This document shows, piece by piece, positions 33,076 through 52,011 of a stretch of DNA of 64,000 bases. Position 1 is the first letter of the stretch, and every line of letters starts with the position of its first letter. The stretch is from Dimorphilus gyrociliatus (taxonomy: Eukaryota > Animalia > Annelida), in assembly GCA_904063045.1 (NCBI GenBank), contig CAJFCJ010000020.1:1232916-1296915 (forward strand), written 5' to 3'. The notes under the pieces are model-generated. The model searched no databases. It was not told the DNA's origin and saw only the letters and a list, made by a program, of their open reading frames with translations. The position numbers and the translations under genes are program-made.

Positions 33076-34521
33076 TTAAACTTTAGACAGGTCAGATCCA
33101 TTTTTCCCCTTGACCACAACTTCCTCAAGCCTCGATTTCTCTTCGAAATCTTTTTGGTTCATTTCTTTCTTTTTCAAATATGTGTAAGCAGCGCTTGCGG
33201 CTAGAACAATGGCATTAGATGCCCACCATAATAATGGTTTAACATCATGATTGTAGGAGGTAGCAATGATAGTTTGAGCGCAAGCTTTGGCAGTTCCACT
33301 TATATTATGTGTCAGAGGACTGGTAACTTTTATTTGAAGTCCAGTTACAAATCCTATAGCAAATCCAAAGACACCCGCTATAGTCATTGCTGTCCAGAAA
33401 TATATACTAGTAATTTGGTTGAAGTGAATAACTTTTGAAACTTCCCCTGACAAAATCATCAGGGGTAAAAATAGAACACAAGCATTTACATTGTTGTACA
33501 GAGTAAGCCTCCAAACATTCTCATCAACAACAGCTAGGAATTTTTTGGTGTAAATAGCGTTTAAAGCAACACATGCAGATGCTCCAACTCCAAATAACAC
33601 GCCCAAAATAGACAATGAACCTAATGTTTAAAATTATTATTTGAGCACATGTTACGAAATTAAAAACATCCTTACCAACTAAACCCTCTTGATCAACGCC
33701 TAGAAGGAAACCAAAAACCAACACGCCACAGCATATCAATAACTTGAACGAAGTCTTTTGTTGTAATATTACATACGATAGAATCTATTGATTTAGAATA
33801 GGGAAAGAAACAAGATATATTGAATGTTTCCTTAATAAAAAATATTAAAAACAAAGATAAACTGTCTGAAAAGTTTCTTTACTCACCACATTGAAAACTG
33901 TCGTCAAAGATCTGACGACATAATAGAATGCAACACCAACATACGTCAAACAGAGATTGTTAAACGTTATCATTCCAACAAACACAAGAGACAGTGGAAG
34001 AATCTTAAAATAATGGGTTGATTGAGATTATTTAGGTAATAATAGTAATAATAATATATATATATATATCTTTTAATAAGATACGAACTTGTTTCAGTAT
34101 GTCCAGTTTGATGACAAAAGCAGGAAATGATATTTGTTGAGGTGCCACCCTAGATAACTGAGAAAAGACGAAACAAGTACCAACAGTAACGACACATTGA
34201 AACCATGTAACAAATAACGGGCAATGTAGGTCTAAAGATGGACTACTTAGTAGGTACTTGTTGAGAAACACCAATGATATGGAGACAAACCTGAAAAATA
34301 GGTCAATTTATTGAATTTTCAATAAAAATACTCAAGTTAATTCATTTTACCAGTATAGAGCAACAACTGATGCTATTTTGAAACTTTTTGATGAGGTAGG
34401 CTCCATCTTCTCTTTATTATCTTCAATTAAAGGCTTAGTGTGTGCGTTTTCACCAGCTGTCAATCAATTAAACTGTTAAAAACTGCTTTGAACAAAAAAA
34501 GGGACAACACTTACACGACAT
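33076..34521 (-). CDS. SLC35C1: GDP-fucose transporter
   Basis: ATG TCG T|intron start; IASVVALYW|[14 protein letters not shown]; [12 protein letters not shown]; [19 protein letters not shown]. Confidence 0.92.
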
Positions 34522-34798
34522 ACCGCTTCTCACCGATCTATTGGTAACCGGTTGACCGGTTTGAAAAAACTGAAAGCGGAAATAGGAGGAGCGTAATTAA
34601 AACTAGTCTTTCTTTTTACAATTCACATTTTTCACTCGAACTGTCTACGTTTCACATTAAGTTTCTCCATCAAACTAAAACGATATATGGATAAAATGAT
34701 TCAATATTTAATTAATTAACTCTTCCTGGCTATTCAAATTTTGTTTGCTTTCTCATGACATTTTGATATATCTATGACAAACCAGTTAGCTTGAGAAA

Positions 34799-37700
34799 AT
34801 GTCTGATACTGCAACGGCATTCCTGCATATAGGAGACATTGTCTCTCTTTATGCAGAAGGGAGCTCCAGCAATGGATTTATGTCAACTCTCGGGTATGTC
34901 AAGTTTTATAATTGCGTAATCAACAGTCGCTGAAATTGTGACTTTTCGCTTGCAGATTAGTAGATGATCGATGTGTAGTACAACCAAGTAGCGGTGACTT
35001 GAATAATCCACCAAAAAAATTTAGAGGTAAAAACATTCTATTTGCTTATAAGGTTATCGATTATCAGTTATCTGTCAAATGCAGATTGCCTTTTTAAAAT
35101 ATGTCCTATGAACCGTTATTCGGCCCAAAAACAATTTTGGAAGGCCACGAAACAACATGCTCCCCATACAGACGGAACATTATTGAAGAAACTACAGGTT
35201 CGTTAAATTGTAAATTCCCCCTGGCTTTCCAAATAGCATCAATTTTATCTATAATTTAAGTAGTTTTATCTAAAACTTTGATAAGCTGTAAAGAATCGTA
35301 ACTGATGAGGAATTTCTCTTGATAAAATTTATTTGGATTTGAGAGAAATTGTATTATTAAATTATAGAAATTCATATGTCAATTAGGAACGTTGTAAATG
35401 CAACGTACAAATAGATTTAGTTATGGCAGTACTCTGTCGTAATTATGCATTAATTGATAAAATATATATAGCACTGTGGAAATTAACGTATATATATATA
35501 TTTATATAAGTATATATATTCATATTCATTTTCATAGCATGCTGCCGATTTGGAGAAGAAACAGAATGAAAATGAAAACACGAAGCTATTGGGTGATATT
35601 GTCCAGTATGGGGGTGTTATTCAGGTAGAAAATTAGCTTTTATTTACGAAATTCAATGGTCTAATTGACATTTATAATTCAGCTTCTTCACGTTAAATCA
35701 AATAAATATCTTACGGTCAACAAAAGGCTTCCGGCACTTAAGGAAAAGAATGCAATGAGGGTAATGCTTGATGCTTCTGGAAATGAGGGATCTTGGTTCT
35801 ATATTGTTCCATTCTATAAATTACGTAGTCCAGGCGATAGCGTTAGTTTAAATCGCTTTTAGAATTCAGTTTTAATCCGGGTGTGGTTTTAATATGAATC
35901 CTACAGGTTGTTGTTGGAGATAAAGTCATCTTAAATCCTGTAAATGCTGGGCAACCTTTACACGCTAGTAAAGCGGAACTAGACGATAACCCAGGTAAAT
36001 TAATTAGCAATTGGTTTGAAAAAGATTACCAAGCTTAAGATGGACAGTTGATGCGACTTAATTGTATTACATAGGTTGTCGCGAAGTAAATTCAGTACAA
36101 TGCAACACAAGCTGGAAAATTACCCTCTTTATGAATCATAAGGAAAACAACGACGACTATTTAAAAGGGGGTGACGTTGTTAGGTTATTTCACGCCGAAC
36201 AAGAAAAATTCCTCACTGGGGACGAATACAAGAAAAAGCAATATGTATTTCTTAGGACTACAGGGCGTACTTCAGCTACAGCAGCTACGTCCTCAAAAGC
36301 TCTCTGGGAGGTAGAAGTTGTTCAATTAGATCCTTGTAGAGGAGGTGCCGGACAATGGAAGTCGTTGTTCAGGTTTAAGCATTTGGCAACTGGTCAATAT
36401 TTGGCAGCGGAGGTAAATAAAGAGAATGAATCTTGAAACTTTTTGGATATCTCTTATTTCTTATTGAAGAAATCTCATAAAATATTTACAATTACAGGTG
36501 GATAACGACGAAACACCAGATATTATGCGTTCAAAGCTAAAGGCTGGTTTCCAAGTACTTCATCTAGTATGCGTTCCCCACGGTAATGATCCAGCTTCTG
36601 TCTTCGAATTAGATCCTACAACAATGACAAAGCAAGAAAACTTTGTACCAAGGTTTGTACTTTCCACTAAAGATTTATAACCTTTTATAAATGCAAAAAA
36701 AAGATGCCATCGCAATAGGTTCTGCAGTGTAAACTGCGTCGTCTAATGATGATTTTTCAGACAATGTCACGTTCGTTTACGGCACTACGAAACGGAGCTA
36801 TGGGTCCACAGCACTAATTTGCAATTGCATTATCATTTCGATATAAATCAGGACGGCGACAGAGCATGTTATAAGGTTATTGGTCATTTGGCTTATGAAC
36901 ATTTTTTTTAAAAGAATTCTGTAGAACCTGTTGCTGTGGGCTTCTTTTTCGTTAATTACTTTTCAACACTGCTTTCGATTAGCATGATTTTTTTTAATTC
37001 TACTTTTTAAATAATCAAAAAAAAAACAACGATTGGCAGTTTATAATATTACTAACTGTTTGCAATTGCGGTGCTGCTTGTTTTTTTTACGCAGATCGTC
37101 CTTCGTAAGGCTTAGACATTTGTTCACGAATACGTGGGTACATTCCACGTCGATTCCGATTGATAAAGAAGAGGAAAAACCTATTATGAGTAAGGTAGTA
37201 ACTAATTTTTCTTCACTCTGTAACTACTAATTGCTTGTAGCTTATTAATTCTCATTCCATAATATGATTTTTATAGCGTTAATATTTTGCTGGATTTTAA
37301 GTCTATATCTATTTAAATAGGATCTAATGCAAAATTAATATTATGAAATAACATCTAACACAGATTGACTTTAAATCCAGTTTTTTACGTATTGTCTATT
37401 CTATATTTAAGGTGGTAATATAATATTGCAAACATTATAGCTTGGATGTGCTAGAACGAAAGAAGACAAGGAAGCTTTTGCAATTGTTCCCGTTTCCCCT
37501 CAAGAAGTAAGGGATTTAGATTTTGCAAATGACGCTTCGAAAGTTTTGCAAGCAGCTGCTAATGAGTTGGATAGGGGGAATTTAAATCAAACTCAACGTC
37601 GTTTAATTGAACAATTGCTGAGAGAAATAATATGCTTTGTGGCCCTATTGGATACACAATCAACGGTTGATCCATTAGAAGTTGTGATCATTAAACCTGA

Positions 37701-40700
37701 CAGGGAACGCCCAAAGCTATTGAGAGAACAAAATGTTTTGAAGCAACTTTTTAGGATTCTTCAAGCTCCATTTCAGGGTGATAATCCACAATTTCGTTTA
37801 GAAGATTTAAAAGGAAATAAACACGCTGGCTATAAATATATATGTAAATTATGCTATCGAATACTTAAACTATCACAACAAAGTTATCGAAAAAATCAGG
37901 AATATATCGCAAAACATTTCGCCTTTATGCAAAAGCAGATTGGTTATGACATCTTAGCAGAAGATACAATAACCGCCTTGTTACATAACAACAGAAAATT
38001 ACTAGAAAAACATATAAATGAATCAGAAATAGAAACTTTTGTAAGCTTAGTTAGGGAAAATGGAGAATCTAGGTAAATTATCAACTATTAATCTTTTTTT
38101 TTCTTTTTTAAATTAACTGTTTAAGATAATTAGCTTTAATGATAAATATTTTTTTAAAGAGCTAATTATTTTATATCTCTTTTCATTTTAAAATAAATTT
38201 AGATTTCTTGATTACCTATCGGATTTGTGCGTCTCCAACAATGTAGCCATTGCTCGTACACAAGAATTAATTTGCAAGTCAGTCTTGTGTCCAAAAAATC
38301 AGGACATTTTAATAAATACGAGGTAAGAAATGTTCTCGAAAAGAGAGATTAGTTATTTTAAGTATTTTATACATTGTAGGAATTTAACTATAAATGTATA
38401 CCGTATATATATATTTATATATGTTCTTCTGTTGCAGCTGTGCTAGAGAAAAAACCGAAATTTTGCAAACTGAATATGAGAATGGTGTTGAAAAAAGAGT
38501 ATTTGAGTCAGAAGGAAAAATTGAACAAATTTATATAAAGATTACGAATAGGGAAGATCCCACTGGACCGAGAACAAATCTATTGCTACATGAAGTTGCT
38601 GATGTTGTGAAAGGTGGCATTTTAAGATATCCGAATACATTCGAAAAGCAAAAGAAGCTATTAGATTATTATCAGTGAGTTAAAGATATATGCACTATAT
38701 ACATATATACAGTATACACTGTATATTTTATTTTGTCTTGTTTTTTATACATTTATAAATATATAAATCTAATCTATACAGGCATCAGCTAGACTTGTTC
38801 GCCAATATGTGTATGGATCGTCAGTACCTGGCTATAAATAATATTCAATTTAAAATCGAATTAATGCTAAGGTAAAAATCCTTTTTATACTTTTAAGAGG
38901 CATTAATATTTAAAAAAAAACGAAACAAATAGATGTATTGCTGATGAAGAGTTCCCGGATGACTTACGAGCTTCGTTTTGCCGTCTATTCATTCATATGC
39001 ACGTTGACAGAGATCCACAAGAGACTGTTACCCCAGTTAAATATGCACGTCTTTGGGATGATATTCCGACAACTATATCAATTGACAATTATGAAAAAGG
39101 TAAAGCTAAAGAGAAATGTGAAGAACGAAAGAAATTTCAAAAAACAATTAAATTCGTTGAGGAATATTTGACAAACGTTGCTGTGTCTGCAAAATCTTTA
39201 TCAAGTATGGACAGTGGCAATAATTCTTTAACTTTAGAAGTTGTAAAATTAGCTAGACATCTTATATATTTTGGATTCTACTCTTTTAATGAATTATTAA
39301 ATTTAACAAAAACACTTCTTTCAATTTTGGATTGCGTAACTAATAGTACTGCTCCTACTGCTCAAGTTGATGTTAATTCCTTAGCTATGATGAAACCTGG
39401 TTTACATAATATAGCTAGTGTACTAGCTCAAGCGCAAAAAACGGTTCAGAAATCTGACGAAGAAGACGTTATTGTAATGAATACTAAACTGAAAATAATA
39501 GAGATCCTACAGGTGAGTATCATAAATACAATTATTAGGACATATTTCAATAAGTTTTTAGGAAAGACGCATATTTTCAAATAAGTTATTGACAGTTTAT
39601 TATGGATGTGAGGAAGGATTATCGCATCACGTGCGTCTTATCAATATTTAAAAAAGAATTCGACGCCAATGCAATGCAATCTGCAGGTTAAAAAAATTAG
39701 AAGCGCTACTAGATTTATTAACACTATTCTTAAAAAACACGCTAATCTAAATTTTTACTAATCTGCTTAATACGATATTTTCATTGATTTTATTTATAAA
39801 AAAAAACAAAACACTATTCATGTATACGCACTAGGTTTAAAAAAAAGAAGTCAGTAATCAAACAGATAGTATAAAGTGGAAAAAAAAAGAAAAATTGTAT
39901 TAGTTAATTGTATTAATAATCTTTTGTTCTTGAATGAAAAATCTTTTTCTTTTTTTTTTTTAAAACACATCAAAACGTAAAATTGCTACAGTTTATATTG
40001 AATGTTCGATTGGACTTTCGAATTTCCTGTATTCTATCGGTCTTCAAACGAGATCACCGAGCCGGAAACGGTGAGAGGAGGATATTTTCAGTTCATTTCG
40101 TTTCCATTTTTTCCTGCACGTTTAAAAAAAAAACGGCATGTCTGCACGTATACCTTTTTTCTCATACAATAGAAAAAAATTTATTTTTATTCCTTGGAGA
40201 AAACAGGAATAAATGGGTCATGTCTGAAAATAAATCTAAAAGGGACGAGAGATTATCTAAGGAATAATAATTCTAAAAAGTCCTTTTTATATTTAAAATA
40301 GAAAACATTAGTTGCTTATTGTGCCTTTTTCTCTTTATATGATTAGCCTTATACAAGTATATTAATGAGTATAAGCATGTAGATATTATATTTATATAAT
40401 TTCTACATGTCTCTATAATTTACAATTTAATGTATATAGAGTGGTAAAGAGCTCTTATGTTGATTTATCTTATATCCATCTATCAATCTATTGTGCTGTC
40501 TTTGCACAGATATATATATATATATAACTGTATTATATATTAATATATATATATATATATATATATACAGTATACTGTATATATAACTACAGTATATATC
40601 TACATATATAATATACCTTATATCTATAATAATAATAATTCACCTTATACCCTTACATGTTTATACCTTAAACAAATTATTTAAATATCCGTATTTTATT

Positions 40701-43700
40701 AATATATATTTTGTTTTCAACTTTAGGTTTGGATTTGGAGAGTATAGCCGCACAAGCCGAAGATATATTTGGCGGAAGGTAGGTTAAATATTATTTAAAA
40801 ATTTACAATAGATTTATAAATAATTAAATGAAAAAAAATAATAATCTATTCGTGTCCAGCAACTACAGAAGGTATTGTAATTATTAAATTATGTTAGGGC
40901 ACATTTTGGCGCACGAACAACTTTTTTTTTTCTTTTTGTTTTTTAAAACATTTTTTTCTCATTATATATATTTTTTAATATATGAAAAATTGAGATTATT
41001 GTTGTTTATTTAGTATTTACATATATAATATACACATATACTGTATATTTATAATGTACTCGATATTAATTATTTTCAATTATATAATTGTTTTTTTTTA
41101 ATTTATATTTACTTTTGAATAAAATAGTGACTACAGTGCGGAATTGGATCTTGATCGACAAGGGGGTAGAATGTTTTTGAGGGTTCTACTCAATTTGGTT
41201 ATGCACAATTACCCACCGTTAGTCTCTGGGGCTCTACAGTTGCTCTTTAGACATTTTTCTCAAAGGCAAGAAGTTCTTTTAGCGTTCGAACAAGTTCAAT
41301 TATTAGTTCAGGCCGACGACGTCGAGAATTATAAAGTTATAAAATCAAATCTTGATCAACTAAGAATTTTGGTTGAGAAATCTGAATTATGGGTATATAA
41401 ATCCAGCAAAAAGAAAAAGAAATCTGATAGTTCGAAGGATGAGAAGAAAAAGGAGAAGAAGAGACCGTTAGATATAATTACACCTACTTTGGGGATGTCT
41501 CATATCGATTTGAATCATGGTCCAAAAATTGATTCTACAGCTGCCGAAAATTATAAGTCAATTCAGGAGATATTAAAGACATTTATAGCCTTATGTTATA
41601 ATGATGCAACAGCAGCCCCTAAAGTATACGAACAGCGTTTGCTAAGGAATATGAACGCTCATGAAGTTGTTTTGGAACTTTTGCAAATACCGTACGAAAA
41701 AAGCGAAGATCATAGAATGATTGAAATTATGCAAAAGGCGCATGAATTTTTACAAAAATTCTGCCTGAGCAATGCCCCAAATCAACAGCTATTATTTGGA
41801 AGTTTAGAGTTATTTTTAACGCCAGGTTTATTGGAAGCTCAAACAGCTAAAGCAATATTTAAAGATAATCCAACTCTATGTAACGAAGTATCGGAGAAGG
41901 TTGTTAATCATTTTGTCCATTGTATTGAAACGAATGGAACTTACGTTGAATATCTACATTTTTTACAAACAATTGTCAAATGTGACAAACAATATATAAG
42001 GAAAGCGCAGACGGCAGTAATGGCAGAGGTTGGTAAATTATTATACTTTTAATAAGACATACTTTAAATTATTATAAATTAGGACTCAGCCTAAAAGAAA
42101 AAGAATAAATTATATTTGTTTTTTTCTTTTTTTAAAATATTAATATCTTTATTAATTCTATAAGATATAAATAATTTATTATTATATTTAACGTTTTTTT
42201 TTTCCTTTTTTTTTGGTTTACTTTCATTTTTTTTTTTGCCTTATAAAATAGATTTCTCGTATAAATTCTCAGGTATTTTCACATAATAATTTTTTTCATT
42301 ATTTCTCTCTCTCTCTCTCTCTCTTATTTCTTTCTTTTTTTTTTCAACAAAATTTCCTAATTTTCTCTTCTTTTTCATTTTTAATACTACGAAAAGAAAT
42401 TAAAAAAAGCCTTAAAAATAATTCATTTTAATAATTACTATAGCTTATATACTTTTTCTTGCTATAGTTTATCATTCGTTCATTTTCTTCTTTCTATCTC
42501 TCCATCTTTTTAACTTGTACAAAAACGCAAAACCATACAATTACAATTTAATTAGCTAAACTAATTCATAAAAATAGAAATAAAATATTTTTTTCTTATG
42601 GAAATTCATCCAAAAAAATCAAAAAAAAAAATCATTAATGAATTTACTAATTACAATTTCATGAATGCTTAAAAACACTCTTATTGCATCTCTGAATTAG
42701 CGCAACGCTGAAGTGATATATAATCGAAAAGCTCAAGATCTAGTTATGGCTTCCGTTAGTACTAATCGTAGAGTATTCGCTTTATTGTTTCGTTTTACAA
42801 AAAAAAACAGAAATTTTTGCACTTGATTATTCTTTTATTTATTATTGTTATAGTTATTTTGTTTTTTTCGTTTCGTTTATGTACGGTATACATTCATTTA
42901 TATATTTATATATATATATATATGTATATATATATTTATATTTATATATGTATATATTTTGTCACTATGTTATTAATGGTTTAGAAATTTGATGGCTTAA
43001 GTCTAGCGAAAGTAGCAAGAATTGACAAAAGTATTAAATATATCGTGTTGCAATTTTGTAGTTTTTTTTTTATATAGCTAAAGAAGATTTGTATTATTTT
43101 CACCACAAAAAAGAAACACATTAGCAATTATTATTTTACTTTACAGACTACACCAAAAAAGGAGTATTTACGTTGAGGGAGGGTAATGTCACTGGGGAAA
43201 TGAGAGGTTTGGGAGAAATTTTAAGCTAGACTTAAGCCTTTTTTTTTTGATTGATTTTAATTCAGGAATTTCTTTTTTTCCCCTTCTCTTTTTAGCTGAT
43301 TAATGTTGGGGAAGATGTATTAGTTTTCTATAATGAACAAAATTTTGGCAAGTTGGTCACGCTGATGGAAGAACAAAAGAATAAACTACTCGATCATAGA
43401 TCACCATTAAATTATCATATTAACTTGGTGAAATTGCTGTCTTGCTGTACAGAGGGGAAGAATGTTTATACCGAAATCAAATGTCAATCTCTTCTTCCTC
43501 TAGAGGATATCGTCAGAGTTGTATGTCACGATACTTGCCTGGTTGCCGTTAAAGAAGCCTATATTAACTTTCTAAATCATTGTTATGTTGACACCGAAAT
43601 GGAAGCAAAAGATATATACAGTTCAAACTATATGTGGCAATTGTTTGAGAATTTCATTGAAGATATGAATAAAGTTTTGAAGATTGCTGCAATGGATTCG

Positions 43701-45188
43701 TCAAAAAAAACCCCGGAAGATATAGAGATGGAAAATTATGTTACATTCACAGTAACAAGCGTCATAACGACGTTCTTTTCGTCGAAATTCGCTGAGCAAG
43801 TTCAAACAAGACAGGGAATATTTGCGCATTTATTAGAGACGGCTTTTGACATATTACAATTACATTTAGGATCTTTGGAACAATCGCAACTAAGTGAAAC
43901 AAAGAAATGTGTTGAATTGTTGTATCAAGTAGGTCTGTATTGTTTTCACCTTCAAAAACTCTCTTTCATTCATTAACTTTAACTAATTATGTTCTTAAAT
44001 ATTAGGCAAAGATAGACATATAGCAGTAAATCCTGACCTTCAAGCTCGTATTGAAAAAACCTTAAAAAAACCAACTAAAGCTATCAAATTAGCAGCAGAT
44101 AAATTTGCAAGAAAGATAAAAAGCAAAATGGAACAAAATTTAAAACTATCTCAGAGTAATCGATCAATTCTGGAAGGTTTACAAGATATTGTTAGTCTAC
44201 TAAGTGATCAACTGAAACCTCTTGTGCAAGCCGAACTTTCAGTCCTAGTAGATGTTTTACATCATCCAGAACTACTGTTTCCCGCTGGTACTGATAGCAG
44301 AAAGAAGTGCGAAAGTGGTGGTTTCATATCCAGGTATAGTATTTACGCCCTTTATTGTTTTCTTAATATATCCTTATTTTGTATAACAGATTAATTAAAC
44401 ACACGGAACAATTGTTGGATGAAAAAGAAGAGAAACTATGTATAAAAGTTCTGCAAACTTTAAAAGATATGATGACAGTTGATATAGACTACGGAGAAAA
44501 GGTAGGATAGATTTATTAGGATAACAATCATAAATAATGATAAAAGCTTAAAATTTCCTTTAAAATAATAATTTTACCTTTTCTTTATACATAATATTTT
44601 TTTTCATCTGACATTAGAATTAAAAATAATAATTTTGCATTTAATTTTGCCCTTTTTTTTACCTTTAACCCTCCAAAAAATAACCTTAAACCTTAAAAAA
44701 GAGTACAGAGGTGCAGTAATTATAGACATCGTCGTATTTTCAATATTTTTATATTTATAGCACGATATGATCACTTGAAATTGAGCATTTTTTTTTCTCT
44801 TACCGTTTATCATAGGCCATCACTGAAGAAACGAGCACGCACAAAGCGGTGAGATGTTGATTATCCAACATATTTTTTTTTTATTATATATTTAACACTT
44901 TTAGAAGTATGGTAAATAGAATAAAAGAAATAGGTTTCCATTATCCTCCCAAATAACCATTCGTTTCTAGGATTAATTTTATTTTTATACTAAATATTTT
45001 TGGTTGAAAGGCAGCTTATTGCAATTTAGTTATTACTTTTTACTTTTGCTTTGTTTGTCTGTTTTTTTTTTTTGCACTGGGTAAAAGTATTTACACCTTA
45101 GATTGATTTGTGGAACAAAATTGGTTGGGAATCTGGTATGCAATTCTCGGAATTAGGGAGACAAAGAGTATGAAAATATGTTGTATTA

Positions 45189-45236
<48 letters not shown>

Positions 45237-48200
45237 TATATATAAATGTATATATATATATACACCTAGTTATCTGTTTGTAACATACTTAACAGTGTAC
45301 TTTATTTTATTTTTCTCTTCCAGAGTAAAAGAATTTGCTTTTTCTTGCTCTCTTTTACTGACGAATGTTTTTTTTTGTTATATTTTATTAGGGTGAAGCT
45401 CTTAGACAGTCTCTCCTTACACGCTATTATGAAGGATTTGGACAGTCGCGTAGAAGGAGTAGTATATCTTTTACTGCAGACAGAATTAAGCCAAATGTCA
45501 TTTCTAGGGCAGAAATGACTCTTCACCATGTCCAGTGCCATTTAGATCGGGAAGGAGCTACTGATCTTGTTGTTGATTTAATTATAAGTGACCATTCCCA
45601 CCGAATCTTCTTAGAAACAATTGAACTTGGAATAGCCTTATTGGAAGGTGGTAATAGAGATATTCAAAAATCCTTATTGAAGAGATTACAAAATGATAAG
45701 AATTCGGAAAAGTTTTTCAAGGTTTTCTTTGATAGAATGCAATTGGCTCAACAAGAAATTAAATCCACTTCTAATGTTGGAACATCCGATGGCCTTGGCG
45801 AACAAAAGGATGAAGAAAAGGATGTCACACAACAAATACACCAGTACAAACAGACGAATGGGAGTATAATGAGCCATAATATGAAAGAGGAAATGAATGA
45901 AGCTGCCGTTAGCACTAGTAAAGCTATTCTTACAGTTAGAAAGCAGAGGCTAGATACCCTAGCTACCGGCAGTCCGGATGAACTTCAAACGGACGATGGT
46001 TTGGATAAAGACAAACACAGGGATGAAAAAAAAATGTCTGCAGATATTCTAGTAATGCAACCAATACTAAGATTTCTGCAGTTGTGTTGTGAAAATCATA
46101 ACTTAGAGCTTCAAAATTTCTTAAGAATTCAAAATAACAAAAATAATTATAACTTAGTTTGTGAATCTTTACAATTTCTTGATTGTATTTGTGGATCTAC
46201 CACTGGAGGATTAGGCCTTTTAGGTTTATATATTAATGAGGAAAATGTTGACTTGATTAATCAAACATTAGAAACCTTAACGGAATATTGTCAAGGTTCT
46301 ATTTCTTTTACTTTATTGATATTTTATTAATAAGATACATTTTTTTTGCAAAATAGGACCATGTCATGAAAACCAAGATGCTATTGCTAGACACGAATCA
46401 AATGGTATTGATATCATAATTGCCTTAATATTAAATGATATAAATCCTCTTGGTAAAAAGAGAATTGATTTGGTATTGAAGTTGAAGGTAGAAATAGCAT
46501 TTTTCTATAAAACGTCAACTAATTATTTTTATTTGTTTTAATACAAATGAATGAAACGATAGAACAACGCGTCCAAATTGTTACTTGCCATAATGGAGAG
46601 TCGTTACGAAGGGGAAAACGCTGAAAGAATACTATATAACATGAGCCCTAAACAATTAGTAAGTAAACAGGTCTCCCATAAATACTTTGTTTCTCCCTTT
46701 TTTGATATGTCAGTATTTAGTTCTCAATTATGGAATATGGTTTTCAAGATTTTGAAAAGGTTACGCATGATATAGAAAACACACGCTTTATCTTACACTT
46801 TTTGCCCCAATAAAAATACAAATATGAGTTTTTTAATTTCAATTTTATATTTTAATGTTTTTTCATCACAAATTATAGGTTGACGTTGCCGTGAAAGCCT
46901 ATAATCAATACGAACAGTTGGAAGAAGAAGATTGTTTAGAAGACGACGACGATGATGATCAAATTAATCCTAGAGATGTTGGTCATAATATTTATATTTT
47001 GGCTCATCAATTAGCCCATCATAATAAAGAGTTGGCAGCTCTCTTAAAGAATCCTGATCCTCCAAATCCGGCTCTAACCTATTACGCAAAGCACACCGGG
47101 CAAATTGAAATTGTAAGGCACGATAGAACTCTGGAACAGATTGTCTTCCCCATACCTGAAATTTGCGAATACCTTACAGCAGAAACAAAAGTAAAACTTT
47201 ATCAAACAGCCGAAAGGGATGATCAAGGTAGTAAGGTAACTGACTTTTTTGAGAGACATACAACTTTGTTTGATGAAATGAAATGGCAAAAGAAATTACG
47301 TTCAAATCCAGTATTATTTTGGGTATCTTCCCATATGAGACTTTGGAGTGGAATAAGTTTCAACTTGGCCATACTCTGCAACTTAATTGTAGCCCTGTTT
47401 TATCCCTTCTCTTCTGGACCAGGAACTTTAGATAGAAGATTATCGGGTCTGATATGGATGGCTATGATTGTGTCATTGGTTGTCGTTATAAGTACATCAA
47501 AAACTATTGGTTATCGGACATTGGTTGCTTCTGTAATATTACGGCTTATATTTTCGATTGGTCTTTCGACAACTTTATTAATAATTGGTTCCTTACACGT
47601 TCTGAATAGTACTATATTTATGATTGCTCTGATGGGTAATAGTGGAACATTTACGAAAAGTTTCAGAGAAATATTAACCGACTTCGAGTTTGTCTACCAT
47701 ATCGGCTATATAAGCATTTCACTTAGTGGAACTTTCTTTCATCCTTTCTTCTTTTCACTCCTCTTGCTAGATGTTGTATATCGTGAAGAGACGCTAGTAA
47801 ATGTCATAAGGAGTGTTACAAAAAATGGTCGCTCTATCCTCTTGACAGCAGTACTTGCTGTTATTCTGATATATTTGTTCTCGATAATCGGCTTTATATT
47901 CTTCCAAGATGATTTCCTTATGGAGGTTGCTCCCCTGGAGCCGATCGTAAACACTGACTTGGTTAAAAATGCTGCTAAAATGGCGACGAACCTCGGGCAA
48001 ACTGAAAGTTGCTCGTCTGAGAAAGAGTGTAATATGACATCGACAGAAGCAAGCTTATACGGAGTCGAAGATGATAGCGAAGTTCGAGAAAGGCATTGCG
48101 ATTCGTTGATTATGTGTATTGTAACCACTCTAAACGAAGGTTTACGTAACGGGGGCGGCATTGGTGACATTTTAAGAAAACCTAGTCAAAAGGTACGTTC

Positions 48201-49620
48201 TATTAAACATTTAAAGCTACGCTCCTTAAACAATAACGTTTATTTACCATGCCTAATATATTTTTATTTATATTATATTTAACTAATTCATACTAATCGG
48301 AATATTAAAAATTTTGGAAACGGTTTTAGGAACCTCTCTTTATAGCTCGTATTATTTATGATCTCCTCTTCTTCTTCATCGTCATTATTATCGTTCTAAA
48401 TTTGATTTTTGGAGTTATCATCGATACGTTTGCCGACTTAAGAAGTGAAAAGCAAAATAAAGAAGAAATATTAAAGAATACATGCTTCGTTTGCGGTTAT
48501 TATTAAGATATCGTCGTATTCTGCACGGATAATTCTTTTGTTTAGCTGTTTTATCCGTTTTAAAAAGCAATCATAGTCAATAGATTGTCATTAGATCTAC
48601 TTTATGTAGTTCAAACGTTAACCTTTTTTAATGGCAATAATTGAGAGTTTTTCTACCTTTTTTTTAAAAAAAAAAGGATGTACTTACCCAGCCACGCATC
48701 TATTCTACTCACCTAAACGATTGTCTACTTTCATTAATCTTGTTTTTTTTTGGTTTTTGAATGTTGTATTATTTTAGGAATCCCTCTTCATATTCCGAGT
48801 TATCTACGATCTTCTCTTCTATTTTATATTAATCATCATCGTTCTCAACCTTATCTTTGGAGTGATCATCGATACGTTTGCCGATTTGAGAACAGAGAAG
48901 CAGAATAAAGAAGAAATTCTTAAGAATACTTGTTTTATTTGTGGTTTGTTTTAGTTTGTAGTAATTTTTTTTTGCTTGTAGTTAATTTATTGTTGTGTAA
49001 ATTAATAATTATTAAAGAAAGAACACATTCCTTTGTAACCCTCTTATAATAATTTTTTCTCTTTTAAGGAAATCGTTAAGCAATTATTTTTTTAAGCGGA
49101 TATCCTTTTGGTTTTTATTCATTTAACAGGTTTGGATCGTTCATCATTCGATAATAAGTCGATTTCTTTCGAGGAACATTGTAAATCGGAACATAACATG
49201 TGGCACTATTTGTACTTCATTGTTTTGATTAAAGTAAAAGATCCAACCGAGTATACTGGACCAGAGAGTTTTGTGCACTCTATGATAGCCGAAAAGAATC
49301 TAGATTGGTTTCCACGCATGCGTGCCATGTCATTAGCGGCAGATGAAGGTGAATCAGAGCAAAATGAGTTGAGAAATTTACAAACAGCATTGGACGACAC
49401 TAAAGATTTAGTAAAACAGCTTTGCTCTCAACTGAACGAACTGAAAGATCAGGTAAGATGATTTTCTTTTGAAAAAGTTGTAAAAGTTAATATATAATTT
49501 ACTGATTGATTAATTGAATAGATGATGGAACAAAGAAAGCAGAAGCAGAGGTTTAATCTTATGCAGCCATCAATGAATCCTCTTTTGCCTACCCCAAACA
49601 CTTTAGATAACGCGCAATAA
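34799..49620 (+). CDS. ITPR: Inositol 1,4,5-trisphosphate receptor, about 27 constitutive exon positions plus multiple alternative exons
   Basis: [21 protein letters not shown] start; FLRTTGR and QSYRKNQE ligand motifs; RIH domains; [10 protein letters not shown] selectivity filter; [14 protein letters not shown] gate helix; TCF[VI]CG...HCKSEHNMW zinc finger; TAA at 49618-49620. Confidence 0.98.
36761..36875 (+). other. ITPR mutually exclusive exon 1A (115 nt): [39 protein letters not shown]
   Basis: TTTCAG acceptor, AAG|GTTATT donor, phase 2 to 0 like 1B; homologous VRLRH...WVHST. Confidence 0.85.
37095..37194 (+). other. ITPR mutually exclusive exon 1B (100 nt): [34 protein letters not shown]
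   Basis: ACGCAG acceptor, AAG|GTAGTA donor; canonical IP3R sequence. Confidence 0.93.
39596..39686 (+). other. ITPR mutually exclusive exon 2A (91 nt): [30 protein letters not shown]
   Basis: GACAG acceptor, G|GTTAAA donor, phase 0 to 1. Confidence 0.85.
39992..40070 (+). other. ITPR mutually exclusive exon 2B (79 nt): [26 protein letters not shown]
   Basis: CTACAG acceptor, G|GTGAGA donor, phase 0 to 1. Confidence 0.88.
42701..42754 (+). other. ITPR alternative exon 3B (54 nt): [18 protein letters not shown]
   Basis: AATTAG acceptor, GTTAGT donor; homologous to and the same length as the last 54 nt (41975-42028) of the upstream exon. Confidence 0.7.
44816..44848 (+). other. ITPR 33-nt cassette microexon [11 protein letters not shown] at the SII-equivalent position
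   Basis: Polypyrimidine...CATAG acceptor, GCG|GTGAGA donor, in frame phase 0, between DYGEK and GEALRQ. Confidence 0.75.
45195..45233. repeat. (TA)n microsatellite in an ITPR intron
   Basis: About 19 TA units. Confidence 0.95.
48330..48495 (+). other. ITPR mutually exclusive pore exon 4A (166 nt): [55 protein letters not shown]
   Basis: TTTTAG acceptor, G|GTTATT donor, phase 0 to 1. Confidence 0.93.
48778..48943 (+). other. ITPR mutually exclusive pore exon 4B (166 nt): [55 protein letters not shown]
   Basis: TTTTAG acceptor, G|GTTTGT donor, same length and phase as 4A. Confidence 0.93.
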
Positions 49621-49884
49621 TGTAGTATCTGGTGCTCTTTTTATTCCTGTTAGAAATCGAAGAATGATAAATTTTTGGAAAAAAGATGATTCTAATGAAA
49701 AAAATGTAAATGTATCTTTTTTGGGAAAAAGGGATTTTCAAAATGCTGTAATACAATTATAAAATCTAATAATTTTGTTTCATTACATTTATTTGTGAGA
49801 CAGGTAAGTTCTACGGATCGGACGCCAAAGCAATAAAATTCTACTAATACCCAATGTTCATATGTGTCCCTTAATTGTTTCCTT

Positions 49885-52011
49885 TCAAAAAGTGCTTGGA
49901 GAAGGTGTGTAACAAGCGTTACCTGAGACACCACCCATGTCACCGAATGTGTTTGCGTAGCTTGTTTTCAAAAAGTTGACATAGTTATGCATAGATCTGT
50001 TTGTAGCAGTAGATTGCTCCAACCTTTCTTTTAGATCGTATAATTTAGAATTCATTTTCCTTTCGGATTCATCTCTCTCTCTCCTAACCCTGGCCACTTC
50101 TGCCCTTGCAGCAGATAGTTCAGCCTCTAATTCACTAATTCTTGCTACTGCGGCCCTTTCTTTTCCGCAGGACTTTTGCCTAGCTTGTTCAGTTATTCTT
50201 CTTGATTCTGTAACAGCCGTCTCAAGCTGACGAGAAAGGCCCGCAACTTCTTTTGACCGTTCCTCCAATTGAACTTGGATTCTGTGCACCGTCTCATCTC
50301 TTTGAGCCAAGGATGACTGTAATTCTACATTCCTCGCCTCCAATTCTCGAACCCTTCTTTCCACATTTGATAGTTCATGCACGTGAACGTCGTTTTGTAT
50401 TTGACGATGTTGAGATGTTTGATGAAGTTTCGATTTCAGTTCATTTTCTTTCTTTTCGGATTCATTTAACTTCTGTGAAACATCGGCTAATTTTAATTCA
50501 GTTGCTTTAAGCAACTCTGGGACAGGTTCAAGCTGAGCCAGACGTTGCTGAACGCGGGAACGAACCTCTTGCACAGCTATGCCGCACTCCTTTTGTAACT
50601 TCGCCGTTAGACGTTGCTCTTCTTCCAGCCTCGATAACGCGTCGTCAGCTTCTTCTCTGGCCTTTTTCAACTGTTGTTTATACTCTTCTAATAAGCGTTC
50701 AGCCTGACCAAGACTTTCCCGGGCATTGTGAATTTCAGTCTCGGCTCTTTCATACTCCATTCGAGACATCCTCTCTCTTGAAATGGCCTCCCTTTCTCTC
50801 TGTTCCATTCTATCAATATCAACTTTGGTATCTTGTTCAATGTTCAGCAATCGATTGTGTAGAGCGGTAACTTGAGCATCTAAAGCCGATTTTTCTTTCC
50901 TGAGTAATTCATTTTCGGTTTTTAATTCCATTACATCAGCATCCCTTTGGGTCACTTGTTCATTAATAATTTGCAGTTTTTGCTCGCTTGTATTAGCTCT
51001 TTCTTTTTGTACTCTTGTTGCTTTTTTTAAAGCTTCTTTATTCTTTGTATACTTTTCGCGTGTTGATGCCAGCATATTTCGAGCATATTCCAGGTCTAAT
51101 CGGGCAGTAGCTAGGTCAGATTCGAGGGTGCGAACCTGAACAGCTAAACGATTGCAATCGGCCTCTTTCGCTTTGAAGGCTTTTTGTAGATGAGCTCTTG
51201 TTGTTTCTAAGGCTGTTTGAGCTCCCGAGAGTGCTAAATTTTCATCTTTTTGGGCTTCAGCTGTCATATGAACTTCTTGCATAGTTCTTTCTTGTTGAGA
51301 CAACGCTTCCTCAGCTTTCGCTAACTTATGGAGAAGTAAATCGCGTTGCTCTATAAGGCGATGAGTAGCAGCTTCAGAGTCGTGCGTTTCATGCAGTAAA
51401 CTTACCAAAATTCGAGCTCCCCTTTCGAAATCTCCCAATTTGGATACCAGTAGGTCTCTTTGCTTGTTAATCATATTCCAATCGCTACCACATAGTTTAC
51501 GCTCATCTCGAAATCTCCTCATAACATCACGAAGACCATCGGCATGACGAATTGAAGCTGTTGCATCTAATTCAACAGAGACAAGTTTGTGGAGAAGAGC
51601 CTCCTTTCCCTTACTTTTAGCGACATCGTCAGTTTCTTTCCTCAAGGATCTCTCAAGAGCAACCTCTGCTTTCAAAGACCCAACTTCAGAAACCAATTCT
51701 CCTACCCGACTTTCGTATTCATGCATCTTTACTCGGACATTATCTTCTTCTTCCGTTGAGACTTCAACTACTCTTGGACCGCCCGGAGCTGGTTCACTCG
51801 AAGCTAAACATCGAGATCGTATAGAGCTCTTTGCAGGTGGAGGTATCCATCCATGCTCTCTTTCCTTTATAGCTCTTCGAACGTCAGATTTCGAATGGGA
51901 TGAATCTAGTCTTTTTTTTACGTGTACATGAACAGCAGTATCCTCAGCAACATGCACATGTACTGGTGAGACTGCTCCCCCTCTTTCAACAGTCATGATG
52001 AGTTTCTGCAT
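49885..52011 (-). CDS. ODF2: Outer dense fibre protein 2/cenexin-like coiled-coil protein; CDS appears intronless (true start may be the MTVERG ATG)
   Basis: SPVHVHVAEDTAVHVHVKK and WIPPPAKSS motifs typical of the ODF2 N-terminus; long coiled coil; C-terminal MHNYVNFLKTSYANTFGD. Confidence 0.85.
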   Translation of the reverse strand: MQKLIMTVERGGAVSPVHVHVAEDTAVHVHVKKRLDSSHSKSDVRRAIKEREHGWIPPPAKSSIRSRCLASSEPAPGGPRVVEVSTEEEDNVRVKMHEYESRVGELVSEVGSLKAEVALERSLRKETDDVAKSKGKEALLHKLVSVELDATASIRHADGLRDVMRRFRDERKLCGSDWNMINKQRDLLVSKLGDFERGARILVSLLHETHDSEAATHRLIEQRDLLLHKLAKAEEALSQQERTMQEVHMTAEAQKDENLALSGAQTALETTRAHLQKAFKAKEADCNRLAVQVRTLESDLATARLDLEYARNMLASTREKYTKNKEALKKATRVQKERANTSEQKLQIINEQVTQRDADVMELKTENELLRKEKSALDAQVTALHNRLLNIEQDTKVDIDRMEQREREAISRERMSRMEYERAETEIHNARESLGQAERLLEEYKQQLKKAREEADDALSRLEEEQRLTAKLQKECGIAVQEVRSRVQQRLAQLEPVPELLKATELKLADVSQKLNESEKKENELKSKLHQTSQHRQIQNDVHVHELSNVERRVRELEARNVELQSSLAQRDETVHRIQVQLEERSKEVAGLSRQLETAVTESRRITEQARQKSCGKERAAVARISELEAELSAARAEVARVRRERDESERKMNSKLYDLKERLEQSTATNRSMHNYVNFLKTSYANTFGDMGGVSGNACYTPSPSTF

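Follow-up and report, generated by a model that had tools for sequence, protein, structure and literature searches.

The closest analogue of the arrangement described here is found in the calcium channel CaV1.2 (CACNA1C), whose exons 8 and 8a are homologous, lie in tandem and are used one per mRNA, and the choice between them is set by PTB acting on flanking pyrimidine-rich elements (PMC3060452). In the family of the inositol trisphosphate receptors (IP3R), alternative splicing has been described for the sites SI, SII and SIII of vertebrate IP3R1 and for a conserved insect site at about residues 922-929 (PMC8301844), and the common splice site of insect ryanodine receptors (RyR) is located in the second SPRY domain, which is cytosolic and separate from the sixth transmembrane helix, TM6 (PMC8301844). 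Here, we report on a stretch of 64,000 nucleotides from the annelid Dimorphilus gyrociliatus (assembly GCA_904063045.1, contig CAJFCJ010000020.1, positions 1,232,916 to 1,296,915 of the forward strand), which is termed the window in the following and provides the numbering for all coordinates unless another contig is named. The window contains one canonical IP3 receptor gene on the plus strand (34.8-49.6 kb), in which TM6 together with the channel gate is encoded twice, by two neighboring exons that we refer to as A and B. There is hardly any doubt that the two are genuine alternative exons maintained by selection, as judged for exon B from RNA and for exon A from evolution only. We furthermore consider it likely that they constitute a tandem mutually exclusive pair for the C-terminal pore domain, in which B is the default and A the conditional version.

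Two versions of the TM6 exon

Exon A (48330-48495) and exon B (48778-48943) are both located on the plus strand, comprise 166 nt each, start in phase 0 and end in phase 1, and both are preceded by TTTTAG and followed by GT (TTTTAG/G ... G/GT). Exon A encodes the ancestral-like version of the TM6/gate segment (...RSEKQ...CFVC), and exon B encodes the derived one (...RTEKQ...CFIC). The translations differ at seven of 55 residues, namely P/S2, A/F6, I/V8, F/Y15, V/L18, S/T39 and V/I54 (exon A residue first, numbered within the exon). A first-pass annotation of the window had claimed these positions, lengths and junctions as well as this list of differences, and all of them were recovered exactly. 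Its statement that 8 of 19 codons in a 19-residue stretch differ only synonymously was likewise reproduced when the codons were counted. Over the whole exon, DNA identity between A and B amounts to 76.5%; the codon differences comprise 24 synonymous ones and 7 replacements, and third codon positions account for 29 of the 39 base differences. The pair appears as one direct repeat (48324-48505 and 48772-48953, 77% identity), the only repeat of at least 60 nt within 34000-50000. No other close copy was detected in the whole 77.9-Mb genome, in which the next best TM6-like loci are paralogues with 40-46% identity to the exon. At least five such IP3R/RyR-type TM6 loci are present (C3, C19, C1, C6 and C7; L003-L007). 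Several paralogous release-channel genes thus exist beside the canonical IP3R, and the TM6 search did not turn up a tandem duplicate at L003-L007.

Both exons can be aligned without gaps and from end to end with residues 2560-2614 of rat IP3R1 (3JAV), with E values of about 1e-25 for exon A and about 1e-23 for exon B, compared with only about 1e-8 to 1e-9 for RyR. The encoded region extends from the loop behind the selectivity filter through all of TM6 with its F/I gate to the CxxC of a zinc finger (exon residues 52-55), the two histidines of which are contributed by ...EEHCKSEH... in the next exon. We take the resulting CxxC...HxxxxH pattern to be the IP3R zinc finger. The earlier description of the exons as covering luminal TM6, the gate and the first zinc-finger half thus agrees with the IP3R1 alignment, and the same applies, on the basis of alignment and translations, to the claim that the two versions have identical gate residues and that five of their differences are luminal to the gate. 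Exon residues N24, F27 and I31, which A and B have in common, correspond to N2583, F2586 and I2590 in IP3R1 numbering. N2583 is a luminal Ca2+ ligand, and F2586 and I2590 are the two hydrophobic gate residues (PMC9663519).

Evidence for both exons comes from a related species, represented by the Logan contig L011, whose large exon shares 94% protein identity with that of D. gyrociliatus. It contains both exons in the same order and with all four splice sites (A at L011:3528-3693, B at L011:4095-4260), and this tandem arrangement was assembled independently in four runs. Orthologous exons share 91% DNA identity as opposed to 76.5% between A and B within each species, and recent duplication and gene conversion are therefore excluded. 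Between the species, exon A exhibits 15 substitutions, 13 of them at third positions, and contains neither a stop nor an indel; counted by codon, these are 14 synonymous changes and a single replacement (V/I54). For exon B, 14 synonymous codon changes are accompanied by no replacement at all. When each exon was compared with its counterpart in the relative by the NG86 method, the ratio of non-synonymous to synonymous substitution rates (dN/dS) was about 0.013 at a dS of 0.60, and not one of 200,000 neutral simulations, in which the same number of substitutions was placed at random, yielded so few replacements. The introns, in contrast to the exons, are 60% identical overall and 52% identical outside a few conserved blocks. 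In both species, A and B are set apart by the same six fixed differences (P/S2, A/F6, I/V8, F/Y15, V/L18 and S/T39). When dN/dS was considered between the two copies instead, synonymous sites proved to be saturated. Judged from these comparisons, the pair already existed when the two species separated (dS about 0.6) and, given the saturated synonymous sites, had arisen long before. An old duplication with purifying selection on both copies, as proposed in the first-pass annotation, is thus substantiated by the retention of both exons in the relative, the low dN/dS and the outcome of the simulations. Selection at the protein level can only act on exon A if it is translated, and this is our main reason for regarding it as a working alternative exon.

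The same data bear on the possibility that the pair is an artefact of assembly, with haplotypes or paralogues placed side by side. This is extremely improbable: nothing was found in its favor, the tandem arrangement recurs, with diverged introns, in contigs of the relative from four runs, the only two close copies in the entire genome both reside in this gene, and the divergence of the copies (76.5% identity, synonymous sites saturated) greatly exceeds that of alleles.

Outside this species pair, a single TM6 exon was found in seven other contigs (L013, L014, L015, L016, L018, L019 and L020) from at least six taxa. Here it must be taken into account that L019 and L020 look like one taxon, that L018 ends soon after the exon, with a downstream copy being possible there, and that L013-L016 share a KELILK motif with moth sequences and may originate from arthropods rather than from close relatives. 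Most likely, the pair is lineage-specific and mutually exclusive. The sequence of exon A closely resembles the TM6 consensus of animals in general (e.g., 51 of 55 residues are identical to cuttlefish ITPR), and the derived residues S2, F6, Y15, L18 and T39 are found in exon B. In two of the single-exon contigs the TM6 exon is fused with the next exon into one open frame (L013:12612-13097 and L016:1738-2223). The intron behind CFxC-G has been lost in these two, and L014, L015 and L019 retain it with a length of 52-58 nt.

Transcripts, reading frame and splicing signals

Logan contigs of four runs (X1-X4) were mapped to the window. The only runs that match this stretch are metatranscriptomes and a few small ones; the four used here are shallow, with a depth of 2-12, and rare forms are lost from contigs. 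In these runs, exon B is used and is the only form assembled. It is found on its own in X2, X3 and X4: the junction from 48192, where the constant upstream exon ends, to 48778 is present in X2 and X4 and skips exon A, and the junction from 48943 to 49130, where the next constant exon begins, is present in X3. Variants of exon B in contigs from X1 and X3 (at 48828, 48867 and 48876) are all synonymous and affect third positions. A further contig from X1 (48786-49158, depth about 8) is unspliced through 48944-49129 and deviates within this intron by two 1-nt deletions and several base changes. It represents either RNA with a retained intron, in which case a stop would follow within a few codons, or DNA of a slightly different strain.

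The reading frame sets narrow limits to the use of the two exons. Because the phase is 0 at the end of the upstream exon and the length of either alternative exon is 3n+1 (166 nt), a channel can be encoded only by an mRNA that contains one of the two and not the other. With A or B alone, the frame stays open to the TAA at 49618-49620. When both are included, a stop is encountered 43 codons into exon B, with two exon junctions still to follow, and when both are skipped, a stop follows after 32 codons. Messenger RNAs with premature stop codons are subject to nonsense-mediated decay, and the A+B and the double-skipped forms are probably degraded in this way. In the arrangement that we propose, each productive mRNA would carry exactly one of the two exons.

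The constant parts of the gene are those of an IP3 receptor. Along 36062-48192, the Pfam domains MIR, RIH, RIH, RIH_assoc and Ion_trans follow each other in this order, all above gathering scores. The upstream exon (46879-48192, plus strand, phase 0 to 0) encodes TM1-TM5, the pore helix and, at its end, the RNGGGIGD stretch with the GGGIGD selectivity filter, and terminates with ...ILRKPSQK. It is preceded by an AG at 46877-46878, RNA contigs begin at 46879, and the exon is closed by a strong donor, AAG/GTACGT, at 48192/48193. This channel-domain exon aligns with residues 2079-2509 and 2127-2558 of ITPR2 and ITPR1 chains, respectively, at E values of about 3e-149, and with RyR chains at only about 1e-14. 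By domain order, by filter and gate, and by its greater similarity to IP3R than to RyR, the gene is assigned to the IP3 receptor (ITPR) family. On the other side of the pair, the constant exon 49130-49452 (plus strand, phase 1 to 0) completes the zinc finger with its second half (H...H) and also provides the C-terminal helix, as indicated by sequence, RNA junctions and homologues. It had initially been taken for the last exon, an assumption that had to be corrected: the exon ends at 49452, and RNA contigs contain a further intron and a final coding exon. This intron (49453-49521) has a length of 69 nt and GT..AG borders, and its junction occurs in runs X1, X2 and X3. The final coding exon (49522-49620, plus strand), which is backed by sequence, junction and frame check, ends with the stop codon TAA at 49618-49620. 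The neighboring gene is located on the opposite strand (49885-52011, minus strand) and consists of a single long open reading frame of about 705 residues. In the relative, the corresponding gene (L011:5248-7362) contains the Pfam domains ODF2_N and ODF2_C and is followed by a tetraspanin gene.

The few conserved intron blocks flank the alternative exons. A block of 31 nt (48299-48329, plus strand) is located just 5' of exon A, is nearly identical in L011 and forms a purine-rich, weak 3' splice-site region. On the 3' side of exon A, two blocks (48496-48518 and 48534-48556 within 48496-48556, plus strand) include the weak donor GCG/GTTATT. The region in front of exon B (48753-48777, plus strand), with a conserved block at 48753-48768, constitutes a U-rich, strong 3' splice site, and a GU-rich block (48944-48961, plus strand) coincides with the donor of exon B, GTG/GTTTGTTTTAGTTTGTAG, and continues behind it. 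The fraction of pyrimidines at -23 to -4 is 0.40-0.45 for exon A and 0.65-0.75 for exon B, an asymmetry that is kept in both species. Because the acceptor of B is U-rich and strong and that of A is purine-rich and weak, B would be the default exon, in line with its being the version present in RNA, and A the regulated one. Exon A, with its weak acceptor embedded in conserved intron blocks, would then be included conditionally, probably only in some cells, stages or sexes, and would need a splicing activator. A GU-rich motif is common to the blocks 48534-48556 and 48944-48961 (UUGUUUAGCUGUUU and UUGUUUUAGUUUGU); the motif could have remained from the duplication, or it could be a shared site to which a splicing factor binds. 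The intron between the two exons has a length of 282 nt in D. gyrociliatus and of 401 nt in the relative. Simple steric exclusion was considered as a basis for exclusivity and rejected, as introns of this size are too long for it.

Several observations weigh against a mutually exclusive pair with a conditional exon A and two different channels. First, exon A is not represented by any contig in the four shallow runs: contig depth is zero across 48255-48739 and no exon A junction exists in X1-X4, so that among the junctions foreseen in the first-pass annotation those of exon B (48192-48778 and 48943-49130) were found and those of exon A were not. At a depth of 2-12 and with contigs that lose minor forms, exon A is unobserved rather than excluded. 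Second, a search of protein databases with exon A retrieved nothing above 93% identity, and a search with the next exon retrieved only the genomic open reading frame of the relative. This blank is uninformative because RNA-derived fragments of the lineage are lacking in these databases and exon B is absent as well. Third, a search for competing RNA pairing around the exons that is conserved in the two species found none: the best duplexes lie outside the conserved blocks, and duplexes between the blocks reach -8.6 and -8.3 kcal/mol as compared with a mean of about -9 for shuffled sequences, which, with two species only, is a weak test. Finally, the replacements between A and B are mostly conservative (I/V, V/L, S/T and F/Y).

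The first of these points, together with the weak acceptor, would fit a dead or unused pseudo-exon A in a gene that makes the exon B form only. We consider this very unlikely. Both splice sites and the flanking intron blocks have been kept, 13 of the 15 substitutions in exon A are at third positions with one residue change (V/I) and no stop or indel, and neutral simulations never resulted in so few replacements (0 of 200,000). Gene conversion from exon B does not offer an explanation either, since A and B are just 76.5% identical in each species. Exon A could alternatively act as a poison exon that is included together with B to lower channel output by mRNA decay and that never becomes part of a working channel. 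The premature stop of the A+B form, located upstream of two exon junctions, and the conserved intron flanks, which are typical of regulated exons, are compatible with such a role, but a poison exon has no need for conservation of its own protein sequence, and exon A is not only near-perfectly conserved but also the version closest to the animal consensus, which makes this explanation hardly credible.

Possible consequences for the channel

If exons A and B are indeed mutually exclusive, the gene would give rise to two channels with the same filter and gate and six fixed residue differences. The luminal half of TM6 harbors five of these six differences, including one that falls into the pi-helix gating hinge. 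Residues M2576-V2581 of IP3R1 switch between an alpha- and a pi-helix and have been proposed to serve as a gating hinge (PMC9663519). V/L18 corresponds to residue 2577 within this segment and is the sole difference that can be tied to a described functional element. F/Y15 precedes the hinge by two residues, and A/F6 places a bulkier side chain near the luminal start of the helix. A change in selectivity is unlikely because the filter is encoded in the constant exon and the gate residues as well as N2583 are identical. Exon choice would rather tune the packing of TM6 and the energetics of gating, and on the basis of the sequences an effect of this kind is probably more plausible than an effect on ion selectivity. 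The first-pass annotation had put forward exon-level switching of conductance, selectivity or gating as an inference, and a functional switch of some kind would be plausible.

TM6 variation was surveyed by means of a representative search with exon B, which yielded mostly short exon fragments. In a set of 153 distinct TM6 sequences, Y15 and L18 co-occur with each other and with an aromatic residue at position 6 beyond chance (Fisher p 1e-5 to 3e-3, uncorrected for shared ancestry). Parts of the exon B combination recur as the only TM6 in one protein group and in nematodes (...YYRIIYDLSFYVVL...RTEK). The combination of aromatic 6, Y15 and L18 is found in P0014, P0017, P0065, P0156 and P0199 as well as in P0093 and P0120, i.e., in the protein group and nematodes, and T39 is shared by nematodes and exon B. 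The association of residues may reflect a second way of packing the luminal half of TM6 that recurs in different lineages. Taken a step further, it is possible, albeit a tentative suggestion, that this one gene could provide two gate-helix packings, one with A6, F15, V18 and S39 (exon A), which is nearly universal in animals, and the other with F6, Y15, L18 and T39 (exon B), between which it would switch according to cell type.

Alternatively, the pair could be real and mutually exclusive, with equivalent channels as products, such that the duplication merely splits regulation and the residue differences are neutral. N24, F27, I31 and a 16-residue core are indeed identical in A and B, the conservative nature of most replacements (I/V, V/L, S/T and F/Y) points in the same direction, and F/Y15 also distinguishes two solved ITPR2 sequences. 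However, the six differences have remained unchanged in both species across a dS of about 0.6, during which the two exons together acquired a single replacement, and we conclude from this fixation that the exon-specific residues themselves are under selection. The association of aromatic 6, Y15 and L18 also argues against equivalence, as it suggests a coupled packing state. Equivalent channels are accordingly an unlikely outcome. Should the two versions of the gate helix differ in function, they would represent naturally occurring chimeras of minimal extent, a swap of six residues, one of which is located in the proposed alpha-to-pi gating hinge. Such chimeras would be suited for examining the way in which IP3R gating is set by the luminal half of TM6.

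Relation to known calcium channel splicing

No part of IP3R is more conserved than the channel domain, and if TM6 is indeed swapped by means of a selected exon pair, this would be the first case of pore-domain splicing found for the family. A literature search for IP3R with mutually exclusive exons or with splicing in the pore revealed nothing comparable. As far as could be found, the mechanism is therefore known in kind, and the gene and the site are new. The splice sites known for IP3R belong to the same family and, just like the exon pair, generate receptor diversity from one gene, but they are optional inserts in the cytosolic ligand-binding and regulatory regions, none of them is located in the channel domain and none is mutually exclusive. 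Mutually exclusive exons do occur in insect RyR, which belong to the sister family of Ca2+-release channels.

The resemblance to exons 8 and 8a of CaV1.2 is that both pairs encode the S6 pore-lining helix of a Ca2+ channel (IS6 in CaV1.2) and that few residues differ between the alternatives. The channels themselves are of different types. CaV1.2 is a voltage-gated four-domain channel of the plasma membrane, whereas IP3R is a ligand-gated tetramer of the endoplasmic reticulum, and the swapped helix would sit in all four subunits, unlike IS6 of CaV1.2. A further difference is that for the pair described here RNA so far shows exon B only. Diversity at the same positions of the protein is found in vertebrate ITPR1, ITPR2 and ITPR3, where paralogues and orthologues vary at a small number of sites in TM6, exon residue 15 (F/Y) among them. 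In vertebrates, however, this diversity stems from whole-gene duplicates that are able to hetero-tetramerise, whereas in D. gyrociliatus it resides in a duplicated exon of 166 nt within one gene.

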